64,000 bases of DNA from positions 1-64,000 of the forward strand of contig MNCI01000474.1 in assembly GCA_015680685.1 (NCBI GenBank), read 5' to 3'. The DNA comes from Gnetum montanum. Taxonomy: Eukaryota; Plantae; Gnetophyta. Both the position numbers and the translations under genes were made by a program. The notes under the pieces were generated by a model that saw only the letters and a program-made list of their open reading frames with translations, was not told where the DNA came from and did not search any database. Below are positions 9,691 to 64,000 of the stretch, in pieces; position 1 is the stretch's first letter; each line of letters starts with the position of its first letter.

Positions 9691-10424
9691 GATGATTTTA
9701 TGTCAATTTTGAGGACCAAGCACTTCGAAGAGTGGTTGAATAAGTTTCCCAAAATGAAAATTAATTAGCTACAAAAACCACATCCAAATTTCATGTTGTT
9801 CCCTACCCAAACTCAATATATTACAAGTAGAGATAATGCCATCGAATGTCCTCGCACTACCTTTAAGACTTGGAAGATGTTAACTATTTACATTCTCGAT
9901 CTTTTTCAATAACACTGCCATTAACGTGATCCAAGTGTGCACCCTTCAAAAAATTCAATATCCAATTTTGCTTAACAACAATGCTACCATGTCATGGGTT
10001 TTTTACTGAACAAGTATTTGGAAAGTAATTCCATCTATGTTGCTTTGCACATGCTCACTGGTGTACCCACTTCTTTATTGTCTTAAGTTTTAATAGCAGC
10101 TATCAGTCTGGAATGCACCTTCTAGGGTGATTGCAAGTTGCAACCTCTGACAGTTTCAAAGGCAATATCAGCCATAGCAAAGGCACAGGTCAGGTTTTTT
10201 TGTCTAAACATTGTGAAAGATGTTTACATTCTTTCTTTGCTTAGTCAAGACATTCTGCAAAGGCTTTACTTTATTTCATTGTCTCCTCACCTTCTTTGAC
10301 TGGATTAGAAGGACTCTCATCTTGAACATTTGAACCAGGGAAGATAGGCTCCTCATGTAAGTAATAGAACCTTCTTTTTCTAGGTTTCTATTGAGCTATC
10401 TTTGAACTGGATGCTACGTACCTG

Positions 10425-11375
10425 TTGGTTGGAGCACCTTCTCCTAATGCTCGATCCCTTGCAGACCAAGCGATTCTACACCATAGGGATATTAATGATC
10501 TGCAGCAGAGCAATGATGTGGTGCAAGGCGAACTTGAATCTCATGTGGGCAAGATTGAGGCTTTAAATGTATGCTTGTTGTCTCTTGAGGATGAGATCGT
10601 GTTGCTAAAGAAGATCGTTGCAAGATCTTCGCATTGGAGTGGAAAACCCAAAAACTCCAAACTGAAAGTGCCGAAGCCAAAACAATTTGGAGGAAGCCGA
10701 AACGCGAAGGAGTTGGAAAACTTTCTATGGGACATGGAGCAATACTTTTGTGCTGCTCATGTTCCTGGGGACCAGAGGGTCATGATAACAAGCATGTATT
10801 TTATGGAAGATGCAAAGCTCTGGTGGAGGACGCGGCTAGAGAATGATGCAAGTGTCGGTCGCCCTCAAATCACAACGTGGAAGGCGATGAGAAAGGAGTT
10901 GAAGGATCAGTTCCTTCCCCTAAATGCTGCATGGGTAGCACGGGAGTCTCTCAGAAATCTGAGACACACCACTACCTTGCGCGAATACATCAAGGAATTC
11001 AATTATTTGATACTAGACATAAAGAATATGTCTGACGAGGATAGGCTATTTAACTTTCTTTCAGGGTTGGCAGAGCTAAGAAGGCAGAACATGAAAGATC
11101 TGCCAACAGCCATAGCTGCTGCAGATGGGTTGGTTGATTACAAACGGGATAATTCTAAATCCAATTTAGAGCAAAAGAAGTCCCATGAAGAGGGCAAGAA
11201 TGGGGGAAAACAGCATGGAGGCCCGAAAGACAAGAAGGAGGGGATGCCCTCCAAACCCAAGGGAGATGGAGCCTCCCAAGGGAAGAAATTCTCATTTGGG
11301 TGCTTCATTTGTAATGGACCACATCGGGCTCGCGACTGTCTTTCAAGGGAAAAGCTTGTGATCCTCAGACTTTAG
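10425..11375 (+). CDS. gag: Gag (retrotransposon gag domain plus CCHC zinc knuckle), Galadriel-like
   Basis: KVPKPKQFGGSRNAKELENFLWDMEQYF, DAKLWWR, CFICNGPHRARDC. Confidence 0.9.
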   Translation: MVGAPSPNARSLADQAILHHRDINDLQQSNDVVQGELESHVGKIEALNVCLLSLEDEIVLLKKIVARSSHWSGKPKNSKLKVPKPKQFGGSRNAKELENFLWDMEQYFCAAHVPGDQRVMITSMYFMEDAKLWWRTRLENDASVGRPQITTWKAMRKELKDQFLPLNAAWVARESLRNLRHTTTLREYIKEFNYLILDIKNMSDEDRLFNFLSGLAELRRQNMKDLPTAIAAADGLVDYKRDNSKSNLEQKKSHEEGKNGGKQHGGPKDKKEGMPSKPKGDGASQGKKFSFGCFICNGPHRARDCLSREKLVILRL

Positions 11376-26053: not shown

Positions 26054-28245
26054 TTGCAAGGTAACATTGTGTTACCCCCAGATCGATCAGTACCTCAGAT
26101 GATTTTCCGTGCCTTGGCACAGATTGGCATGCAAGAATTATTTGCTGAATACGTTGCAAAAGATTTGGACATGAGGGATTATTATCCCACAAATGCCCAA
26201 CGTATGAGAGACTTAAGGCAGGAGAGCCAACATACATTGTTGAAGGGCAAGGCCCCGCACGTCCTTAGCAAAATAGGAGACGAGGAACCCCTTATCACGA
26301 GTTTTTTAGCAAAGGATGTCCCCCCCCCCCTCCTAACGATGGTGAGGAGGATGAGTATCAGAACCTATGATCAACGATACATATCCCTGGTTCTGATGCT
26401 CGTGAACACCAGCTGTTCACAGAGGGAACAACTACTCATGCTAAGGACGGGCACTTTCATCGTCACAACAATCGGGGTTGTAGCAGCCGAAGAAAAGGCA
26501 AGAAACATCGTCATGGTGATGGTTCCCCTTCTTCTTCCCCTTCTTCACATCACTCATCCTCTCCTTCCACATCTGGGCACAACCACCATGAACATAAAGG
26601 TGAGGATAAAAGTAAAAAGGATGAAAGACCTCGACGTGAAAGTCGAGAGAGAGGACAAGGGCAAGGACGTAGGGAGAGTAGGGAACAACGCAGACATCAC
26701 AAGCATTATAAAAGAGACAATCATGATGAGCCCCTACTCACAACCCAAAGTATGCTTAACATAATAGAGGTAGTTAGGATTCCCACAAGGCATTTAAAGG
26801 ATAGCAGGATCAAACGATTAGACATGAACAACATCCCACGGTTTGAAGGGGGATACAATGCTGATCTGCAAAATCATTTACAGGCATTCCACGATGCCTG
26901 TGCCTTGCTAAATTTAGATAGTGAGTGGCAGAAACTTAAGTTGTTCCCAAGAACACTCACTAAAGAAGCAGAGAGCTAGTACCAGTCCTTAGAGCCAAAA
27001 ACCATCAGGAGGTGGAGTACAATGCTAGAACTATTCAACGAGAATTATCAAATGTACTCTAGAGTGTCCAATTTGCGTAAGCAAATCCAAGGTTGGAAGC
27101 AAGGTACGCACGAACCCTTGGATGCTACCATGGCCTGCTATTACACATTGTTACATTGTTGCCCGGGCCATGGATACGCTCAGCGAGATCAACTTCACCA
27201 CATCGTGGATGGGCTAAGGAATGAAACTAGAAGAACCCTTGGGACTTATGCCCAGGGGAGACTCTCACAACTTAGAGCCCATGAAGTACGTAGCTTGTTG
27301 GAGCAAGTAGCAAACNTGCCGATCCAAAAATTAACAACCAAGGTATCGGCCAAAGTAGACCAAATGTGGGATTCCTTAGACTCAAGAATTGAAATAGTAT
27401 TGAAAATTGTAGAAGTGTCTAAGGTAGAACAAAGTAGTGACAAATGTAAGAAAAAGTGGAGAGATTTAGGCCCTGCACATAACAAGGGTAAGGGAAAAAT
27501 CACTAACTCCGATGTGGCTGAGGATTCTGATTCAAATGATTACGGTGGATGTGAGATCTGCCATTATGACCATCCTAAGGGATGTTACCCCATCATCTCA
27601 CATCTACAGGATTCTAGGGTGTATGCACTTAATCCAAGACTCAACCAATGGCAAACACCTCGAAGGTTACCTTATCCACAAGGTAACCCAAGGAAGTTCC
27701 ACCAACCCTTAACGTATTATCCAAGTGAAACTCCACCATAGCCCACCGGACAGCATCAGTAGTGGCAATACCCACAGTCATGGGGGATGCCACCGCCAAC
27801 ACAACAGTACCCTTACCGATAGCCCAATCCTTATGGTTATTATGTGCAGCAGCCAATTTCTCCAATTGACTCTATGGGTCACACAACTCTCAACCGTCAC
27901 TACCAAGTTTGGGAGTACTTCAGAAGGACTCCTTCTCCTCTGGGAGACATCTCACACTCATTCCATCCTCCTAATCCATCTGCACCTCTTCCACCACAAG
28001 TAGTTCCCATAACACCTCATGCTCCAACAATGCAAGGGGAACTTCCTCCTCAATCGCAACAACGTCACGCTGCGAGAGCTGTAAATATCCAACCTGCTGC
28101 TGGTTCTAACAACTATAAAAAGAGAAGACCTTACTTCAGAACCAAAAGCCCAGACAAACTCTCACAACAACAAGTGGTTGAGGCCATGTACACTCCTCCA
28201 TCACCATCTAACACTTCGGAGAACCCTTCATCCAACAGAGCGTAA
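26054..28245 (+). pseudogene. gag: E2 gag (degenerate) with CEICHYDH knuckle-like motif and Pro-rich tail
   Basis: ORFs 26752-26979 and 27022-27741 (PRFEGGYNADLQNHLQAF, KLFPRTL, DGLRNETR). Confidence 0.85.
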
Positions 28246-30964: not shown

Positions 30965-31721
30965 TGATGAGATGCGATATCGCATGCACCACGATATCGT
31001 GGCCGTCGCGATATTGCATCCCATGTGATATCGCGTCGTCCCTTGCGATATCGCGTACGCGATATCGTGGTCCGCCACCAAATCTATAAATAAGAAGCGG
31101 CACTCCCCTCATTTATCATCCTAGGCTAGAAGTAGCGAAGCTCTAGTAGTTTAGTCACTCCAGAGATAGAATATCTTCCATGTGCCCGCAGTAGGAGTCC
31201 CCAAGTGAACGGTTCTTTATTCGAGCAGCTTTGTACCTGAANNNNNNNNNNNNNNNNNNNNNNNNNNNNNNNNNNNNNNNNNNNNNNNNNNNNNNNNNNN
31301 NNNNNNNNNNNNNNNNNNNNNNNNNNNNNNNNNNNNNNNNNNNNNNNNNNNNNNNNNNNNNNNNNNNNNNNNNNNNNNNNNNNNNNNNNNNNNNNNNNNN
31401 NNNNNNNNNNNNNNNNNNNNNNNNNNNNNNNNNNNNNNNNNNNNNNNNNNNNNNNNNNNNNNNNNNNNNNNNNNNNNNNNNNNNNNNNNNNNNGCTCTTA
31501 GTATAGAAGACATAAAACCATAAAAGACCAAAAAAATCATATACCTCAGACTTACTTAACCATAAACCGTGACAACAACAAGTAAGTCTGGGAAGACAAT
31601 GAATGATTAACCCCAAGTGTTCCATGGGGTGTTTAGGTATTTAGTCTGCGGAGTTCGACCGGATCACGCGTGCTACACTCGTTTCGTATGGTTGAGTGTA
31701 GGGATACCTCGCCACTCATCA
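30965..31721 (+). repeat. E2 3' LTR (contains N gap)
   Basis: Preceded by CTCGAGGAC...GGAGGTA; matches the 5' LTR. Confidence 0.95.
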
Positions 31722-52678: not shown

Positions 52679-54461
52679 TGTCATAACCAAAAATAATGCA
52701 TGTGACAAATAGCATAGGTCATGGCTATTTAATGACTTTAATATTAGTCATGCCATGGCCCTGAAACATCCCAAAAATTCAAAGGCATGCTTGCTTCACC
52801 AAGTCTTTGCAATTCGCACAGCGCTACAGCAATTCTTCAAGAGATAGACGCTCTGATGTTCATACTATCTAGTTCAGCAAGTTTTCTACCCCAAGTGTCA
52901 ACAGGCTAAATGGATACTCCAACCTTCCCACCTGAGTAGTTCATCTAGCCAACAACACACTAAGGAGCGGTGCGTGGAATTTTTGGGGATGCCTAGAATA
53001 CGCAAAACGCTTCAGCAAGTTTTCTGAGTTACGGAGCTTTGCTACGCCACGCTACGTAGTGTAGCAAACTTTAGAACACGTTTGCGGAAGTGCAGTGCTA
53101 CACTATGCTATGCTACGTAGTGTAGCACAGCGTAGCAAAAGCTAGACGATCAATCCCCCTCACCCGACTTCAAGTCCTTCGGCAATGTCTCCTTCTGCCA
53201 AAAAGCGGCTAACTTGGCAAAAAGCAAGTCATGTTTGCCACTACGCTATGCAAAGCTACATGGTGCAATGAGGCGTAGCAATTCTGTGAAAGTGATTAAA
53301 GGAAACTCACAGGGTGGGATAAGATAGTTCACAAGTTTCACTGTGCAAGAGGCAAAGTTTGCAGATTGATGACGTTTTTGTGACTAAGGCTAGTCTCTAC
53401 GCTATGCTACGCTACGTAGCATAGCATAGCATAGAAAATATGCAATAAACAACCAATGCACTTCAAATGTTTCCAATGCATGCAGTAGGACACAACGCAA
53501 ATTTTTTGCTTCGAGCTGGCAGCTACGCTATGCTATGCTATGTAACATAGCACAGCGTAACAAGATGCTATGCTATGCCAAACATGCTACGCTACAAAGC
53601 ATAGCAAGGCGTGGCAAGCAATTACGCTACATCAATGCACTTCACCTAATTACATCGCTTCTCTGACAACACAATGACAATGTGGCAAACTTGTAATTAC
53701 GGCATGGAAGACCCACCCAATGATCATGTAGGCACATGCCGCACAGACAGGTCAGCATAAGCCTAGGGCACGTGGTGTCCAAATTGCATCTTTCACACAC
53801 CCTTGGTCCTATAAATACCCAATGAGCAATGCTCGGTTAGCTCCCAGGGGTTTGAGTTTTCTCTTGGCAATTGGATCGACTAACAATTTTGTTGGCTGAC
53901 AAGCAAAAAAAAAGAGCTAGCAATATAACCTCGAGCATTGTAAGCTTTCTGTTTGACATTGTAAACAGTTAGCACTCTCTGTTGGTATTTTTTTCTCCCC
54001 TTTTCTACCACCTTGGTAGTAGTTTGAATTGTTAACGCCTCAGCCCGCGTTCAAGCACATAGCCGTCTTGCTCTACACGTCTTGGTTACTCTCGGGATCT
54101 CTGCATTTCTCAACGTTGTGCAACCAACTATATTCATTTTGACAGAGTGAAGTCGTAGCTTCGAAGCGGTGCATTTTTCTAACTGCATTTCACTTTGTCT
54201 CCTATTTACTATTGCATTTTACACTGTTTCCTATCTCTTTTACATTTAAGCATTACTTAGCGCTATCAGTCTCGTTTTCAAATCACACATTGCAAAAGGT
54301 TATATTAACACCGACTAAGTCCCTGTCTGATCGACCAGACCATTCAAGGTGCCCTGTTTCGGTTTTATCCAGCATGGCCCTCCTGTAAATTTGGGGTTCA
54401 AACTGTCAACGGCTGCCGACCCCTCGGTGTTTTCTAGCCACCAACGTTTTTGGTCGCTATA
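52679..54461 (+). repeat. E5 5' LTR (~1.8 kb)
   Basis: TGTCATAACCAAAAA ... TTTTTGGTCGCTATA; CCTATAAATACCC near 53808; GCTAC/GTAGC pentamer arrays in U3. Confidence 0.75.
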
Positions 54462-54467
54462 GTTTTC

Positions 54468-54484
54468 TGGCACTAGAAGGAGGG
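54468..54484 (+). promoter_or_regulatory. PBS, tRNA-Asn
   Basis: TGGCACTAGAAGGAGGG. Confidence 0.9.
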
Positions 54485-54539
54485 CCTTTGGTGCCCTTTC
54501 CACATGTTCCCACTCTCAGCAATTCCATACCTTTGACAC

Positions 54540-57500
54540 AGATAAATCAAAGGCTTCTAGACCAACTAATCCAGTTGGCTAGGCTTAGGAAGCAACAGGA
54601 CACAGTGTCTAACCAGTATGAGGCCTTCCAAGATGGACAGGAGGAACTCGATTCCCAATCCGACGAGGGAGGTTAAACCAACCCTATTCCTATCCCTCCT
54701 ACCCAGTCCTTCTAGGCCAATCCATTGTCTACCACCTCTCCCTTTGTGATCACGCCTACGCTCGCGTAGCCTACAATCACAACCGCAATGGGTAGCCATG
54801 TCAACCCTTTGGCATATCAACATCCTCCTTTGTCGATTTTGCCCATTTCATTTGCAGCAACTATGCCTTCGAAAACTGTTCATCAGCCCGTTCCTGTAGC
54901 ACATCACACACCAATCACAGCTACCTTGTCACATGTTCATGTTGTACCTACTTCACAGTCGTAGGCAACTTCCATTTCCATTCCTACTTTCACGTCTATT
55001 CCACCCACCGTGGCGGGCCTGGGCCTGTCCACATGGTGGACCCCATTCACTTCTTCAGCTATTCCACAACCATTGCCGATGTCTCATTATGTTCCCCCTC
55101 AGACCTACCAACCCCCGCAAATGGTACAACCCAACACGGGGCTATGGTCTATGTCATCGATGACACAAGCGGTCTATCTGGCAGCCCAACCAACAGTTGC
55201 TGCCCCAATAGCACCACCTACCAGGTGGTGGACAGCGCAAGTAGCAGCATTCGTGGGGGCTATCCCAATGGTACCATCAATGGATCATGCCCCCACCCCT
55301 ACCATTCTATAGATGGGATCTACCTCGGTAGTTCCCCAACCATCCACAACGTCACAGGGTTTGAACCAAGCGTTCCAGCTCATCCAAACCCTCACCGAGG
55401 AAATAAGACACCTCAAAGCTATTGGGTCTGACACGGTACAAGTCATGGACTTTTACCAAGATGACCCTATCAGCCCTACAATCCCTGCTCTGATGTTACC
55501 CTCAAGGATTTCCCTCCCCCACTTCACGAAGTACAATGGGTAGGGAGATCCCAATGCACATCTTGTCACCTTTAGGTCTAAATCCCTTTTGCTACAACAA
55601 TGGCCGCACATGATTATTCATGTCTTTGCTATGTCCCTAACCGGGAAAGCCATAGATCCGCGCATTACCATGCTCATCTATTTTAACTTTGGAAGAGCTT
55701 CTGACCCAGTTCATGATGTGCTTCAAATACAACTTGAAGCCAGAAACCACGTTGGACTAGTTGATGAGTGTGAAGTAGGATCCTCTAGAACCAGTCCAAA
55801 AGTTCATCCAGCGTTGGAGCGTAACCCTTAACGAAATCTGCGAGCCCATCACAGAGGCCCACTTGATGGCCATCTTTAAGGATGCAGTGAATGACTTTAT
55901 CAAGTCTAAACTGTACTACCTCTCCCCTCGCACTCTTAGTCAAGCCTTCGCTCAAACCATGAGTATACAGGACGCGGTCGAGGCAAGCAAAGACCCAGCC
56001 TACATTACCTACAAAAACACCTTTACAAAGAAGGACAAGGGTAAGGCCCCAACAACCATAGTGGCCGTTGTGGCGACCGAGGTCAACCCCAAACCTAGTA
56101 ACAATAGTAACAAGAATAACAAGAAATTGGCCGTACCCGTAGCTAACCCCGTTCCCAAACAGGGCCACTCACCATAACCTGCTATACTTGCACCTGAGAC
56201 ATCTACACAACCCAAATCAAACTTTGAGCATAAAGATCACTCAAAGTACACCCCACTACCTCTCAAGCCTTCAGAACTTCTGAAGCAGCTACTAGTGGTG
56301 GGGAATATCGAACACAAGGAGATGTCGAAAGAAGGAATCAGGAAACATCAACGCTACTGCTAGCTCATTAGGAACCCTTCTTTGGCCCTACCTAATGAGC
56401 CCCCAGTTCCTAAGGGTTTCAGGCTGGACAAGTTTTCTGACTATCACCAACAGTGTGGTCACAACACAAATTATTATTTGACGTTGCAGTATGACATCCA
56501 GAGGTTGATCGATCAGGGAAAACTAGTGTTGGACGAAAGCAACCCAGTACACCCTGAAAACCAATATATGCATGTCTACACAGACCCCCTCAACGCCAAA
56601 AATGTCGATTATGTGATCAATGCCATTGGTATTGACAGTGATCCTAGGCCACCCTAATAGCCATTCGTGGTCTGAGTGCCTCAATGTAGTGCACCAACAC
56701 CACCAGCGACTGGCCGAAGCTCACAACAATCATCTGTTCTGAGAGTCACTCCGTGGGCATCCATCTCTGCGTCACCTGTTACTGAATCCACGCAACTTTG
56801 CCCACTAACACCGTTAGCTCCTTTCATCATCAAGGGGCCGACTCCTTCAATAGCCCCCACCCCACACAAGACAGTCGAACAACCTTCTCATCCTAAAAAA
56901 TGAGAAGTGTGTTTCACAGGTGAGATGTTGAGAGGAAGTACCATTCCTAGTATTTCCAAGCCTACGTCTTCACCCCGTACATCTACGCCCTCATCACCAA
57001 AGAAAAACGTTGCTATAACTGCATAGTCCACGCTGCCCTACCAAAAAGGGTCTGAACTCAGACCTGAAGTCACCCCTCCTTGGGAAATTTGTCTTCTGGG
57101 ACGAATCGAAGAAGAGGAAAGCATTAAAAAGGGGGGTGACAAAGACCTTTTGGATGCCCTCACTCAGGCCAAGCAAGCTCTAAAATAGAAAAACACTACA
57201 TTGAGCTTGTACGACCTAATCATGGTGTCCATCCCACACTGTGAGGCTCTGATCCGCATGTTGACAGCGATTCCAGTCAATGAAGACATGCCAACAGTAG
57301 AGGAAGCGATCCACTTAGTCATGCTTCCCTCTACGCCTACAGAACCAAAACCATCTCAACTGACTTTCAACAATGACTCCATTAGGGAAGATCTCGAGAG
57401 AGGTCAGGTGACTATGGCACCTCTATTCATCACAATTTGGGTCAGCCAATATCGGATCCGAAGGGTGCACGTTGATGATGGAGCTGCCACGAACGTCATC

Positions 57501-57914
57501 CCCTTTCCTATTGTGGACAAGTTGGGCTTGGTCGACTAGATCAAACCCACCATGATGTCATGCTTGAGGTCATTTAATGGGGCACATGTCCTAGTGAAAG
57601 GCATAGTCCACATAGACTTCGTAGCAGGGGACCAGTTTCCCACAAATGCAACATTCATCATGGTCGAGGAAATGCTCGGGTTTAACCTAATCTTGGGGAG
57701 ATCATGGTTAGCACAACTTAGGGCTGTCTCCTCACCTATACACCAGGAAATTCACCTACCATACACAGGCAAGGAGGTGGTGATCCATGGTGATGAGGTA
57801 GTAGCGCAAGCAATCAACAACATAGACATGGAGCAAGGCTTAGAGGTCGTAACCTCTGAGGATGAAGTGCCTTGTTACACACACGTTAACCATCTAGTAG
57901 GAGAATCATCTTAG
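54540..57914 (+). pseudogene. gag: E5 gag-protease (degenerate)
   Basis: LPHFTKYNG*GDPNAHL; DYHQQCGHNT..LQYDIQRLIDQGKL; RRVHVDDGAATNVIP; FNLILGRSWLAQLRAVSSPIHQ. Confidence 0.85.
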
Positions 57915-58199
57915 CAAGTCAGTCTCCAAGATGAAAGCACATGGGTTGAGTTGTCCTTCCAAGCAGGGGATAATGATGCAAACAAAGACCCTAGCGAAGT
58001 GCCTCGGCCTTACATTCCACTCAATCCATGATGGGTTAAGAAGCAGCTATGCATAGCATAGCAACCCGACTGCTCCCTGCCCAGTTTCCATTCTTTGCAC
58101 ATTACCACCCTTCATGATTTATAATCCATTTGTCTACATATGTTACTAGTTAGCCTTTGTTAAATTTGTTAACGTATCATCTCTTGGGCATGCTACGCT

Positions 58200-58370
58200 A
58201 TGGCCCGAAATAGCCTAAAACTAGCAATGGCCTGAAACGGCCTAAAACTAGCTATGGCCTGAAATGGCCTAAAAATAGCAATGTCCCTCAAAGGCCTGAA
58301 ATGGCCTAAAACTAGTAGCGGCCCGAAATGGCCTAAAACTAACAGCGGTCTAGAATGGCCTAAAACTAGC
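58200..58370. repeat. ~27-30 bp tandem repeat (TGGCCYGAAATGGCCTAAAACTAGCA)
   Basis: About six visible copies. Confidence 0.85.
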
Positions 58371-58505
58371 ACATGAAAATTTTATGCAAAAAATAGCACA
58401 TATACAATGCATAAGTTAATGCAGAATCAATTTCTTTTCCAAAATTTTCTTCTTTATTCAAAACTTTTATCTTTTGGAAAATGTTTGCAAAAATTTTACA
58501 GAAAT

Positions 58506-61500
58506 TCAAAATTTTAGAAAACATCCCATGCTGCACAGGTTGTCCCTGTTTGCATCATCTTCGACATTCATTTCTACATCATTTCCTTTTGCATTGCCTT
58601 TCTCTATGTTGTCCTCTGCCGATTCTTCATTCTTTCCCTCTATGGGCCCTGCACCCTCATCTGGAGCCTACATCGTAGGAATGAAGTGGTCGACTAAAGC
58701 AATGCATGCAAGCTACAACAGAGCATAACCATTAATACAGTAGAAAGTGACTAACCTGAGAAGGGCCTATGTCCGTCTTGAAGGGTATCCAGTCTACACC
58801 AAGCCTGAGGCGACGCCAACCTCCTCTGCCGTAATGTCCATCCAACACCTGTTGCTTGGTTCAGCGTCTGCAGCTGCTCTCATCCTTTCGACGATTATCC
58901 ACCTTGGTGATCCCAGAGAAAAGGAGATGGTTGCGATCTCTCCTGTGGGAAGGTCCACTTTCCAATTAGGAGATTCTGTAACCTTTACCTGCTCTTTGAA
59001 CTTGACATATGTCTCAGAAGCGTCAATGGCATTTACAAATGCTTTATACGTAAACGCCTCCACAGCAGCGTCCGTGTACAGTTTACGATGGGTGGCATTT
59101 TCCAGTTTATACATGTGTTTGTGGTTTTTCTGGGACTGCCCCCATTCGTAAACCTTGGCGCTAAAATCTTTTAAATCCTGACACTTCTGGGCCAACAAGT
59201 CCATTTGCATCCACTGTTCTATTATTTCAAAGGTGGCTTCTACATTCTAACATGCGACAGTTCAAACTCTGGCATAGTCTATCACAACCGTGCACCAATC
59301 CTCATTATTAGTGTCATGGGCTATGAGGAATTCATTCCTCGATTTGAGATCCTCCACCTCGGCGCTCAAGTCAGCCTCCTTTTACTCAGCCTTTTGGACC
59401 TGCTTCCACAGGTCCTCATTGACACACTTATACTCCCACAAGGAGCATGTCGAGTGCAAAGCACATTTGCAAGCCTAATCATATGCGCAACGAGACACCT
59501 CGGCCACTTCAGGTAGGAATGTAGACACTAACTTTCAAAGGTCGTTCTGGGTCCCATTTGAGCTGAGAGGCTACCATGACACAAAGGGTGTAGCAATCAC
59601 GTTAGCATAGCAAGATTAGCAAGCTCAAGAAATTCTAGCATAGCAACATGAGAGCACCTAACACTACTACTTACCCATGTCAAGGTCCACCTACTGAAGA
59701 CGGTTGATCATGTCATCGACAATTCCCTGCATGAACGTAAACTTATCGGGGATATTGGCCCATGGTTTCACATGAGTCAAAGGGGGTCCCGCAGCATCAA
59801 TAGTGGTGCCTGTTACATAACTAAACATATTGGCAATGGCTGAAATGGGCTATGATAAGGCACACACATTGCTGAACTCACCAGCGTCTGATTGCGGTCT
59901 CCCTTCTTGCTGATGCAAGATGATGGTGACAGCCTTGGCGAAAGTCCCTACCAAGTCTGTACAGGCCTCTTCTTCATGCGCTGGTGCCTTTCCTTTTGAG
60001 AGACCAGCATCTTTTTTATTCAAAGAAAACTCTTCTTCATCTCCAAAATTTCCCTCCTTGTTAGTAGGAGGATTCTGCCTGATAACGAGAGCCCCTGCCT
60101 TAGCTACAGGAGTTCTTTCCTTCTTGACCGGGACCCTTCTCTCCAAGACTGGGGCCTCTATGTCTTTATTCATCGCCCCCGTCTTATGAGCTGACACCTC
60201 TTCATCGCCTTCCTCTTCTTCTTCTTCTTCTTCTGCCAATCAAGAAACATATTTGCATTAGCCCAAAACAAGTTAGCGTAAAGCAGGTGCTACACTACAT
60301 TACGCCACCCAACGCAGCATAGTGTAGTACACATCAACAAGATAGGCATCAAACAAAAGTGTATACCAATGGGGGTTGCCTCCTCTATAGTTTAAGCTAC
60401 AGCCGCTGCCCCTCCTCTTCTTCCATGCGAAGGGTTTTCTTAGCTCAAGGAGGCCTCTTCCGCTGCAACTTTTTGGCCACAGTCTCGGCTATGAGACGCT
60501 CCCCTTGTGACACGCTACCGGCTACAGCAGATGACGCCTCTCCTACGCTATCTTGGCCACAAAAGTTGTAGGCCTCTTGATCCTTAGTCATCATAGAGAA
60601 CGACTCCCCAATTATTTCTGGGAGATCTTAGGCTCGGGTGGTCCAGAGGATCTGGCGAATCCACGGTTTGGAAATCTATTCTGCATGACCTAAGCTCCAT
60701 TCTCGTGAACCACCAAAAACTCCACGAAGTGCTTCAGACAGGCTATGTAAAAGGCATAATGTATAATGAAACGGGACTCCAATTTCTTATGGAGCCCCAA
60801 GATTTCAATCTGCAAACCTTTACATAGAAACCTAACCCAGTTGTAATAGGCCCCCTCTTTCATGACCTCATGCATTATCCAGGCCTACTCAATCCCCAGA
60901 ACCTTCCCTTGGGAAAGTAGCTGGGGAAATGCACAAGCACAAAAGATAGGGTAAATATCCCTAGTGAGTCCTTCTTTAAGCTTCTCCATGGGGAGCCCCT
61001 TTGGCTCCTTAGCAATCCCTAACCACTCCTAAATGCCCTTCTTCTGAAGGGTTAACTCCTTCTTGTCCTTTGAACCTATGCCAACGGCAGGGACATCAAA
61101 GAGGTCCACGAACAACTGGTCATTGATTTCAATGATCACCCGTACGTCCTGTATGTGCATGCGGAAGAGGCTCGTCTTGTTAGAAAAGGAGCTAATCAGG
61201 GAGAGCATCTTGGTAGCAAGAACGCTCGGATTCGGGGCTAGGAATAGATCCATAAGCCCAGCCTTTTGAATATTCTAGACCAAGGAGTCTGAAGCCGCAC
61301 CGTTTATCCAATGTTGGCTCATATCTACTTCTTCATACTTGAAGTAGATGTTTGCCTCCTATGTCTCTGCAGTTACCACCGTCACCTCCCAAGGATTCTT
61401 CGCCCCTATAACAGTTTTCACAAGAAATTTTTAGCATAAAAATGTAGAAAATCCAAATATTGCAAAGACACTTGAGCATGTAACACTTACTGTTCAACCT

Positions 61501-62980
61501 ACCAAGTCGGTACAGCAATGGGAACGACAGAAGACTAACTAGAACTTGTTCAACGATGATTGGTTTAAAGGGTTGTGCCCACCCCTCATCCAGCCGACCA
61601 GACCCCTTGCACTGATCATAGGGAATGGGGTATAGGTGTGGGTAGGTGTGGTATTCACCCCTGCATTGACCAATCACACCCGCCCGCAAGTTCTTAGCAG
61701 AAGAGAACTCCTGCAGGGCTATACGTGTTGTAGTCAATAGACCCGGTCAGTTGTGAGGCCCTTCTTTGTTGATATAGAACCTGGTAACAAAACCATACTA
61801 TTAGCATTTGGCCAATATGGCCAGCGTCACACAACACAGTGGAACAAGGCTGCAAAACTCACCCGCCAGCATAGTAAATAGTTCCTGGTGGGTTTTGAAA
61901 GCATGTTGCCATATAACGCGCAAAAAATAATGTGTTGTAAGAATGGTAGTAGTTGTATTCAGGCATATCCCAGATCCAGGCCAAACGCCTTAACCCTATT
62001 GGGCATTAACTAGATCCTTCTCCCTGCCTGCTCATGACTACCCCATCCGTCAGAAACCTCAGGATGCCTCGACTTGCCCCAAGAAATATGGCTTCGGTTA
62101 TGACAGTTGCCTCTTCCTCCTCTAGGTATGACCATACAATCACACTAAAGTATTGGAGGATATATTGTAGGAACTCCTGTGCTCCTTTCCTAAACCAAAC
62201 CCCTCGCTCTCCCATACGTATCTAGGGAGGAGGGGCATTGGCCATGAGCTTGCTTACATGACACAGGACCCCTGCAATTTCTAAGATAATCAGAATTGGC
62301 CTTAGCCCCATCCTGCAAAATACCACTAGCAAGCGTTAGCATCATGTCTAAGTGCAATACATACACAACATAGCAATACCTAGAAGTTCATGCATATAGT
62401 GTAGCATAACCCTCTTCCCGCACATAGCGTAGCAAGAACTCCCACGTCGCGACGTGCACTTGTGGGCCTAATGTAGTAATAGAGCAATTGGTCCTAACAT
62501 GATGATTAACAATATGCCCTAACAAAATACGTGTTGCACTATCACATCACACATGGCCAAACCCTCCTGAAGGTCCTACGCCATGCCATTCGAAATCCAA
62601 GTAATTTAAACTGTCCAAACCCCCGCGATTATGACAACCGTGGCGGTGGCAGTTTAAGTGACCTTGCATGCAACAATGGCATAGCATTTATGCACCCGTC
62701 ATAGCCAAAACAGCAACAGCGGTGATGCAAAGGCCAAAACAACATGATGAAAAAAAACACAAATGACTAAGACTAGCATACAAATGAAAGCAAAAGACAA
62801 CAAAAGCAAAAAAATGATAATAGAATCGCGAAAAAATAAAGGAAGCATAGTAGCCTACCGGGTTAACGGTGTGTCCTCCCACGTCGCGACGTGCACTTGT
62901 GTCACGCACCCTAGGGCTTCCTTCACCTTCTCAACCTTTGCAAGTGCTAGGTAAGTACGTTCCTTCTTTGGAGCCATCAT
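58506..62980 (-). pseudogene. Seven-exon antisense accessory gene of E5: NIF/FCP1-like HAD domain + transposon-accessory-like domain + acidic linker + coiled coil
   Basis: Exons 62980-62859, 62312-61863, 61780-61491, 61405-60367, 60232-59675, 59570-58756, 58667-58506; all introns GT-AG; AATAAA near 58455; TATA-like CATAAATA near 63135. Confidence 0.75.
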
Positions 62981-64000
62981 CCTACTTGCAGACTTTCCCT
63001 CGTCGCTATATAGGAAACCGTCTTGCTCACTATTAGCATGATCGCTCTATGCTCCGAAATCGCTTTGTGCTCCGAATATGGTCTTTGCACTCTTACGATG
63101 AGAATGACAAGCTTACCAAGGTTTAATCTCTATTTATGGCTGTAATGGTGAAAAAGGGGAACTTTCCGCTCTCTCTCTCCATTTAATGTGAAGTGCACCG
63201 TATAGCGTAGCATGCTCACCACGACATCGTAGCACTGTTGGCATTAAAACTTTGACATGCTCCAAGCTAACTGCATGCTTTCCCAAAAAATAAAAAAAAT
63301 ATATACAGCTCTCATTACCAATCCAAAAATACCTTAAACTAGCAATCCCAGAATAGTTGTGACTTTCGCAGTCCGAAAAGACCTTAAACTAGCAGTTTCG
63401 ATCTATCATACGCTAAACTAGCAGTTTCACGTTTTTGCATCGGTAGTTTTGCATTTCTTAGCAGTTCCACGTTCTCGCATCGACAGTTTCACATTTCCTA
63501 TTTTAGTAGCTCTGCATCTTCATGCCATAGCAGTTTTCCATGACTTTAAACTGGCAAAATTTTAATCTTTACATCATACTTCGCTAGTTACATCTCGTCA
63601 TTACTTTGTAAGTTTTCGTTATGCACGATTACTACCAACAGGTGCCTCTTAACCAGACTATCATCTCATCTTGACAGGTTAAGCAAAAAATGGAAGTCCA
63701 TCGTGATCTCTCCACATCTTTAGCTTTAGCAAGTCCACATGGAAATCTCGCAAGACAATTGAACCCCGACCTGATCGACTGGGGGTCGACCACAGCTAGC
63801 AATATAGTGTCCTTAGAAACATCTCCAGACTAGCATGAGCATCTGGTCTGAACTCTAGATTTGATGGCCGAGGATGTAACTGAGGACCCTCTCGTCAAGA
63901 CACTTGTGATCACGTCCAAGGGGGAAATAGAAACATCAAAACTTAGCTTCCTCCTAGACACATAGATGCACAAAAACGTAGCCAAGATTCTACAAGACAA

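Follow-up and report, generated by a model that had tools for sequence, protein, structure and literature searches.

A decayed, intron-bearing antisense gene in Gnetum montanum with a predicted NIF-type phosphatase-fold domain and substituted catalytic residues

What is a phosphatase-type domain doing on the strand opposite to the gag- and protease-like frames of a putative retrotransposon, and was it still an enzyme when the gene that encodes it was alive? The locus that raises this question lies on contig MNCI01000474.1 of the Gnetum montanum assembly GCA_015680685.1, of which positions 1 to 64,000 were analyzed (the whole 64,000-nt stretch is referred to here as the window, and all coordinates are positions within it). 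A preliminary description had read an exon of this stretch as an FCP1/NIF-like domain with replaced catalytic aspartates, carried by a long terminal repeat (LTR) retrotransposon. We favor the explanation, at a probability of about 0.6, that an accessory gene of a retrotransposon has left a dead copy at this locus, and that the NIF-fold domain of this gene had by then lost catalysis and was used as a binding module.

The domain is predicted from the second exon of the antisense gene (61863 to 62312, minus strand), which is 450 nt long with a frame starting at 62311. Minus-strand translation from 62320 downward reproduces exactly the peptide quoted in the preliminary description and, as stated there, shows no frameshift and two in-frame stops, a TAG at 62222-62224 and a TAA at 62006-62008, in 150 codons. 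These stops divide the frame into a first open piece that carries motif I and contains RPILIILEIAGVLCHV (62225-62320), a middle open piece of 71 aa (62009-62221), and a C-terminal open piece of 48 aa that contains NTLFFARYMATCFQNPPGTIYY (61862-62005). The two stops had also been described as being of the C>T type, which is correct but carries no information: a single C>T or G>A change in some sense codon can give rise to any stop codon. The region has a G+C content of 44 to 46% and a CpG frequency of 0.54 of expectation, with TpG and CpA in excess. Such loss of CpG with a gain of TpG and CpA is the usual mark of methylation-driven decay.

The middle piece scores 23.6 bits with the Pfam NIF family (PF03031; E = 4.6e-5) and so exceeds the curated threshold of 21.8; residues 6 to 45 of its 71 align to positions 35 to 74 of the 160-position profile. 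Its neighbors in the ESM Atlas are NIF clusters in 30 of 30 cases (top score, 0.92). A search of PDB sequences with this piece and with the flanking exon 2 pieces returned no NIF match. An independent NIF profile was needed, since the two flanking pieces have no match of their own in Pfam, the ESM Atlas, the PDB, or NCBIfam and plant relatives were not found. The alignment behind this profile, A1, was obtained with a degenerate DNA pattern for D-L-D-E-T-L-V-H, which retrieved 19 loci in viral contigs, mostly from giant-virus bins. A1 consists of 15 uninterrupted giant-virus open reading frames (ORFs), all 15 of which match Pfam NIF (best E = 2.2e-51), and a search of its profile against the PDB recovers CTDNEP1, SCP1, CTDSPL, UBLCP1, Tim50, and Fcp1. 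Giant-virus NIF ORFs (IMG/VR; L002, L004-L009, and L011-L017) share V-W-S-A-G and N-P-x-N with the domain studied here and have intact catalytic motifs.

Among the 1,135 six-frame pieces of at least 30 aa in the window, the A1 profile ranks the 71-aa piece first, at 20.2 bits (E = 1.8e-5), with the runner-up at 4.2 bits; the best of 2,000 shuffled versions of exon 2 reaches 5.9 bits. The 42-residue core of the C-terminal piece scores 7.8 bits at the expected profile offset of 145-186, whereas the second-best offset gives -2.8; shuffles attain such a score at any offset in only 0.7% of cases (p ~0.007). Similarly, the motif I stretch ranks first at its expected offset (profile positions 29-42), yet 24% of shuffles match that result, and its register is consistent with NIF but short of proof. 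On the A1 profile the three pieces are colinear, at 29-42, 86-134, and 145-186, so that motifs I to IV follow one another as in the family. The motifs of the fold core (R-x-G-x-x-E-F-L, V-W-S, and N-P) are kept. The FCP1/NIF motif order claimed for this exon is upheld by the A1 registers, and exon 2 is predicted to encode a NIF/FCP1-SCP-type HAD domain.

Could the resemblance of this open frame to NIF have arisen by chance? The Pfam E value becomes ~0.08 after correction for all six-frame sequence in the window, and two of the three exon 2 pieces lack a database match of their own, both of which would fit a coincidence. A coincidence would also have to extend to a second, independent profile with an E value of 1.8e-5 across the window, to three pieces that fall colinearly into their expected registers, and to the strong depletion of stops in the four-exon chain set out below. 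We regard it as highly improbable.

To ask what remains of the catalytic center, residues were compared at the A1 columns that are invariant or nearly invariant, with the register taken from the profile offsets. Motif I as a whole reads E-I-A-G-V (62267-62281, minus strand, as are all codons given here) where the family has D-x-D-x-T: the nucleophilic Asp is replaced by Glu (GAA, 62279-62281), the acid/base Asp by Ala (GCA, 62273-62275), and the Thr by Val (GTC, 62267-62269). In motif III the Lys is replaced by Arg (AGG, 61988-61990). The Mg-binding Asp-Asp pair of motif IV is replaced by Ala-Arg (GCG CGT, 61916-61921), which stand opposite one invariant and one nearly invariant Asp column. 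The hmmsearch alignment places a Ser (TCA, 62129-62131) at the Ser/Thr position of motif II, within V-W-S, where it is retained. As regards NIF membership, the exon has the Ser/Thr of motif II and lacks the two Asp of the motif I pattern D-x-D-x-(T/V), the motif III Lys, and the motif IV acidic pair (DD or DN). The exchange of the motif I Asp for Glu and that of Asp-Asp for Ala-Arg had both been recognized in the preliminary description; they hold in the A1 register, which adds three more (Asp to Ala, Thr to Val, and Lys to Arg). In this register, all residues needed for phosphoryl transfer are replaced in this copy, and the Ser of motif II alone is kept.

The codons bear on when these replacements took place. 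Only the change from Lys to Arg can be reached by a single transition; the Glu codon requires a transversion, and the codons for Ala (GCA and GCG), Val, and Arg (CGT) are each two nucleotide positions away from the canonical codon. Since the catalytic changes span multiple nucleotides and exon 2 has only 2 stops in 150 codons, catalysis was probably lost before this copy died, although one copy cannot prove such timing. The copy itself is dead, and nothing in it is functional now.

A passive passenger might have arrived at a similar state. In such a history, a host NIF gene or gene fragment was captured once, multiplied with the element, and was never useful to it, and repeated rounds of replication under neutral drift removed its catalytic residues. 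Plant LTR elements are documented to capture genes, a total loss of catalytic residues is expected without selection, the copy is decayed (5 stops in 469 codons over four exons), and no intact relative was found in the protein collections searched. Drift of this kind fits less well with the pattern of change, in that the fold core still gives a profile match while six catalytic-type positions have changed, several of them by two nucleotides. Such selective change at catalytic positions is unlike uniform neutral decay, which would not single them out. Further, splice sites and phase are kept over three introns, and the promoter-like stretch of the gene has the motif GCTACGCTAT of the putative LTR; both observations weigh against such a history. 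We consider a passive passenger, the main rival, somewhat unlikely, and a gene whose domain had become a non-catalytic binding module remains our preferred explanation.

Exon 2 is part of a longer gene, all on the minus strand, that can be followed through four exons (slashes mark the splice junctions). Exon 1 runs from the first ATG (62859 to 62980) to the donor CG/GTAGGC. Intron 1 (62313 to 62858; 546 nt) is of the GT..AG type with the acceptor ttttgcag/G, and intron 2 (61781 to 61862; 82 nt) extends from GG/GTGAGT to ttaccag/G. Exon 3 (61491 to 61780) has an in-frame TGA at 61747-61749 and is followed by intron 3 (61238 to 61490; 253 nt), which extends from CA/GTAAGT to ttcctag/C. The exon 4 frame (60693 to 61237) comprises 181 codons with TAG stops at 61029-61031 and 60885-60887. 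All three introns keep phase. Upstream of the ATG, a motif search identifies a promoter-like stretch (63130 to 63211) that contains a GCTACGCTAT motif at 63202-63211 and CATAAATAG at 63130-63138.

The splice junctions were picked to keep phase and hence provide no independent evidence, but the shortage of stops is independent. When the exons are joined solely for the counting of stops, with the stops left in place, the four-exon chain has 5 stops in 469 codons, compared with 26 predicted from base composition (Poisson P ~5e-7); the other two frames of the concatenated chain have 27 and 33. The peptide that had been assigned to exon 3 does exist. It starts 34 nt downstream of the phase-keeping acceptor (61780), and use of this acceptor adds a third stop. 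No NIF signal was found at the start of exon 3 with Pfam or the A1 profile, and its reading as a C-terminal helix of the NIF domain is unsupported by that profile.

Below exon 4, the remainder of the antisense gene (58453 to 60692) consists of open pieces at 59853-60239, 58797-59246, and 58509-58667. These run to a TGA at 58506-58508, which is followed by an AATAAA at 58453-58458 on the same strand. Exons below 60693 allow too many equally good splice choices for one model. The exon 4 pieces that were searched at E values up to 10 have no Pfam match, and the other downstream pieces that were tested have none at E values up to 1. A PMD-likeness of exon 4 was considered and has no Pfam support. 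Similarly, Pfam detects in the downstream antisense pieces neither the PMD that marks the extra ORF of Ogre elements nor the Transposase_28 domain that marks that of Retand elements.

Separately, an exact 26-bp direct repeat with one copy in intron 1 (62439-62464) and the other in exon 1 (62876-62901) holds a 12-bp palindrome, ACGTCGCGACGT, with four CpG. Both copies are intact despite the regional depletion of CpG (observed/expected, 0.54). A regulatory site with an ACGT core is one possible reading of the repeat, and a small duplication of recent date is another.

What argues that this gene belongs to a retrotransposon? On the plus strand, gag-like open pieces (55313 to 56654) contain Y-H-x-x-x-G-H followed by an L-I-D-x-G stretch, and protease-like open pieces (57189 to 57911) contain VDDGAA and then ILGRSWL; both were recognized by eye only. 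Upstream of them, a motif search outlines a putative LTR promoter region (53097 to 53817, plus strand), in which TATAAATA is found at 53810 and GCTACGCTAT-type motifs occur 11 times. At the other end, a polyprotein-like frame at 63860-64000 (plus strand) reads by eye like the linker that precedes reverse transcriptase (RT). The 3' end of the antisense gene (58453) lies ~540 nt past the end of the protease frame (57911), and the gene fills the space up to the frame at 63860-64000.

The motif GCTACGCTAT connects these parts. With up to one mismatch, this 10-mer occurs 18 times in the window, compared with 1.3 expected occurrences, and 17 of the 18 lie within 53097-63211. Eleven are in the putative LTR (53097-53595), mostly on the plus strand, and the antisense gene has six in and near it, at 58053, 58192, 60542, 62396, 62424, and 63202. 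The three nearest the 5' end of the gene (62396, 62424, and 63202) are on the minus strand and so have the same orientation to transcription as those in the LTR. The sharing of GCTACGCTAT ties the antisense gene to the putative LTR region, and it suggests that the motif may be a promoter element common to both. Because gag and protease motifs can be read by eye and a short motif is shared with the putative LTR, we infer that the antisense gene is a member of the retrotransposon. Its placement between protease and RT would follow, at this locus, from its position after the protease. Carriage by an LTR element of the Tat lineage, as proposed in the preliminary description, is thus borne out in one respect, in that a spliced antisense gene adjoins gag- and protease-like frames, but the Tat lineage itself is not, since these frames have no Pfam or homology match and RT, RNase H, and the 3' LTR lie outside the window.

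A host NIF pseudogene might instead merely lie beside a truncated gag-protease fragment, outside of any element. A window that holds neither a second LTR nor RT, and in which no tool matches the gag and protease frames, is in keeping with such an arrangement. It would not explain why GCTACGCTAT is common to the putative LTR and to the flanks and an intron of the antisense gene, or why the gene takes up the space from ~540 nt past the protease to the polyprotein-like frame that was read by eye. We therefore view a neighboring pseudogene as improbable and return to a gene carried by the element.

Several results nevertheless weigh against a retrotransposon accessory gene with a non-catalytic NIF-fold domain. 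The gag- and protease-like frames have no match in Pfam (E up to 10), in the PDB (where no retropepsin was matched), or among homologues. According to Neumann et al., domain libraries give poor coverage of the GAG and PROT domains of LTR retrotransposons. RT and the 3' LTR are not within the window, which ends at 64000. When the region was compared with the remainder of the window by tblastn and blastn, neither a second copy nor a second or 3' LTR came to light, and there is no LTR-like sequence between the antisense gene and 64000. A blastp comparison of this element's frames with the other elements in the window, including their gag genes, gave no match.

Other such points concern the domain. 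The strong score is confined to ~50 residues of exon 2, and the motif I piece alone is not significant against the A1 profile. Reading exon 2 through with X at the stops gains nothing (18.5 bits versus 20.1 bits for the piece alone, as local A1 scores), because the substituted catalytic columns cost what the flanks add. Modeled by AlphaFold as a single sequence, the 71-aa piece forms a helical hairpin (pLDDT, 80) in place of the expected strand-helix pattern; we judged this model to be uninformative. Finally, relatives were sought among 1.84 billion representative proteins, by word index, and in metagenome contigs, and none was found. In the first of these, a phmmer search with the 71-aa piece gave one match, to a 699-aa tandem-repeat protein via 7 short stretches, which was judged to be spurious. 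The word-index homologue search returned nothing for the 71-aa piece, the 150-aa antisense ORF at 58797-59246, or the protease piece, and the scan of metagenome contigs found no relative.

Taken with these points, the accessory gene that we envisage would belong to a Ty3/gypsy (Tat/Ogre-like) LTR retrotransposon. It lies opposite the strand of the gag- and protease-like frames, directly downstream of the protease frame, and has its own TATA-like promoter stretch, GT-AG introns, and a poly(A) signal. An antisense orientation is the only arrangement that lets introns survive copying through the element RNA. The domain of the progenitor would most likely have bound phosphoproteins or partner proteins as a module without catalysis, by analogy with Tim50. 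That it bound a polymerase C-terminal domain (CTD) or influenced silencing is speculation.

A more far-reaching version, which we hold to be unlikely, is that a Tat/Ogre-like family keeps an intact, separately promoted, intron-bearing antisense gene of this kind in its protease-RT gap. The product would be a NIF pseudophosphatase, possibly joined to a PMD-like region, that favors the element by docking on host factors in their phosphorylated form, for example, the polymerase CTD or components of silencing. On the sense strand, splicing would then have to remove the gap as an Ogre-type intron of very large size, and the product would be an element-built counterpart of the host PMD-PP7L module.

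Comparison with known systems shows which parts of the preferred explanation have precedents. The element's domain shares with the NIF/FCP1-SCP HAD phosphatases (SCP1/CTDSP1, CTDNEP1, UBLCP1, and Fcp1; CPL and SSP in plants) the profile match, the colinear arrangement of motifs I to IV, the motif II Ser, and a core with R-x-G-x-x-E-F-L and V-W-S. It departs from them in having E-x-A-x-V for D-x-D-x-T, Arg for Lys, and Ala-Arg for the Asp pair. Those enzymes are encoded by host genes, whereas the predicted exon 2 domain would be encoded in a putative mobile element and could not be expected to work as they do. In Arabidopsis, the host family comprises five CPL and 16 SSP genes. As for the host subfamily nearest to the domain, its V-W-S and N-P signatures would suggest one that is UBLCP1-like or related. 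A precedent for a role in binding only is Tim50, which has the NIF fold without catalysis and is among the proteins recovered by the A1 profile. In yeast Tim50, a presequence receptor, the catalytic motif is not conserved and the protein is not known to act catalytically. Tim50 is, however, a mitochondrial host protein, and exon 2 shows a likeness to it at the family level only.

The closest counterparts among mobile elements are the extra ORFs of the Tat clade, which may be antisense or sense and are located either 5' of gag or in the stretch from pol to the 3' LTR. PMD is found in 431 antisense ORFs at the 3' side of Ogre elements and Transposase_28 in 506 Retand elements, and the antisense gene of Grande is transcribed from its own promoter. 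Like the gene as interpreted here, the Tat/Ogre/Retand ORFs are accessory and can be antisense to gag-pol, are found in large non-chromovirus gypsy elements, and in some cases have a promoter of their own. They differ in position, since the present gene directly follows the protease, and in content: in the literature examined, they carry PMD or Transposase_28, and a NIF domain, introns in the antisense gene, and a location after the protease are not among their described features.

Ogre elements also provide a possible equivalent for the space that the gene occupies. They have a short intron, with a mean of 274 bp, between the GAG-PROT and RT frames, and this protease-RT gap is likewise non-coding on the sense strand directly after the protease. 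At the present locus, at least 5.8 kb follows the protease and contains a whole antisense gene, whereas the Ogre gap averages 274 bp; with RT beyond the window, the equivalence of the two may be regarded as a working hypothesis.

A combination of transposon-related and phosphatase-type domains is known from host proteins. MAIN and MAIL1, both of them PMD proteins, with their phosphatase-like partner PP7L, and PMD-PP7 fusions act in the silencing of transposable elements and in gene expression. They would offer a functional analogy if the downstream exons of the antisense gene were PMD-like. PP7 belongs to the PPP family, the fold of which is unrelated to NIF, and PMD likeness is undetectable by Pfam in this copy.

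We know the NIF domain from none of the plant LTR-retrotransposon literature examined. A screen of 121 angiosperm genomes reports 15 non-canonical domains in LTR elements, nine of which are named in its text (PMD, G-patch, AIR1, DUF1409, YgdH, L26, B3, ArgoL2, and 2-ODD). Plant LTR-retrotransposon surveys do not list a NIF domain, in agreement with the statement in the preliminary description that such a domain had not been described as a Tat accessory gene, and no text was found that links PF03031 or FCP1 homology with transposable elements, which is not proof of absence. What appears to be new here is the predicted NIF-type passenger domain; extra genes in Tat/Ogre-type elements are already known.

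The extra genes of the large Tat, Ogre, and Retand elements are widespread, and their few recognized domains, PMD and Transposase_28, say little about mechanism. If a domain with a phosphatase fold had specifically lost catalysis, it would offer a testable handle on a binding partner, on escape from silencing, or on the tuning of the element's own transcription. The arrangement would also illustrate how a retroelement can keep a spliced gene, namely, by carrying it backwards, and it suggests that an Ogre-type protease-RT gap can expand enough to accommodate an entire gene. The value of this single locus is modest, since the copy is dead.

The surroundings of the gene and the rest of the window contain further repeats and elements. 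On both sides of the antisense gene there are tandem arrays in direct orientation that repeat CCTAAAACTAGCA with a period of 27 nt, at 58175-58398 (~8 copies) and 63319-63423 (~3 copies). Tandem repeats are known from the internal regions of Tat-clade elements. Two other gag genes are present in the window, at 10395-11372 (plus strand; Retrotrans_gag, E = 4.4e-15) and 26980-27738 (plus strand; E = 3.1e-4), and both are unrelated in sequence to the gag-like frames discussed above. An assembly gap at ~31130-31500 (a run of N; the whole window has 291 N) falls inside direct repeats that are spaced 5.98 kb apart (25052/31027 and 25579/31575) and are probably the LTRs of another element.

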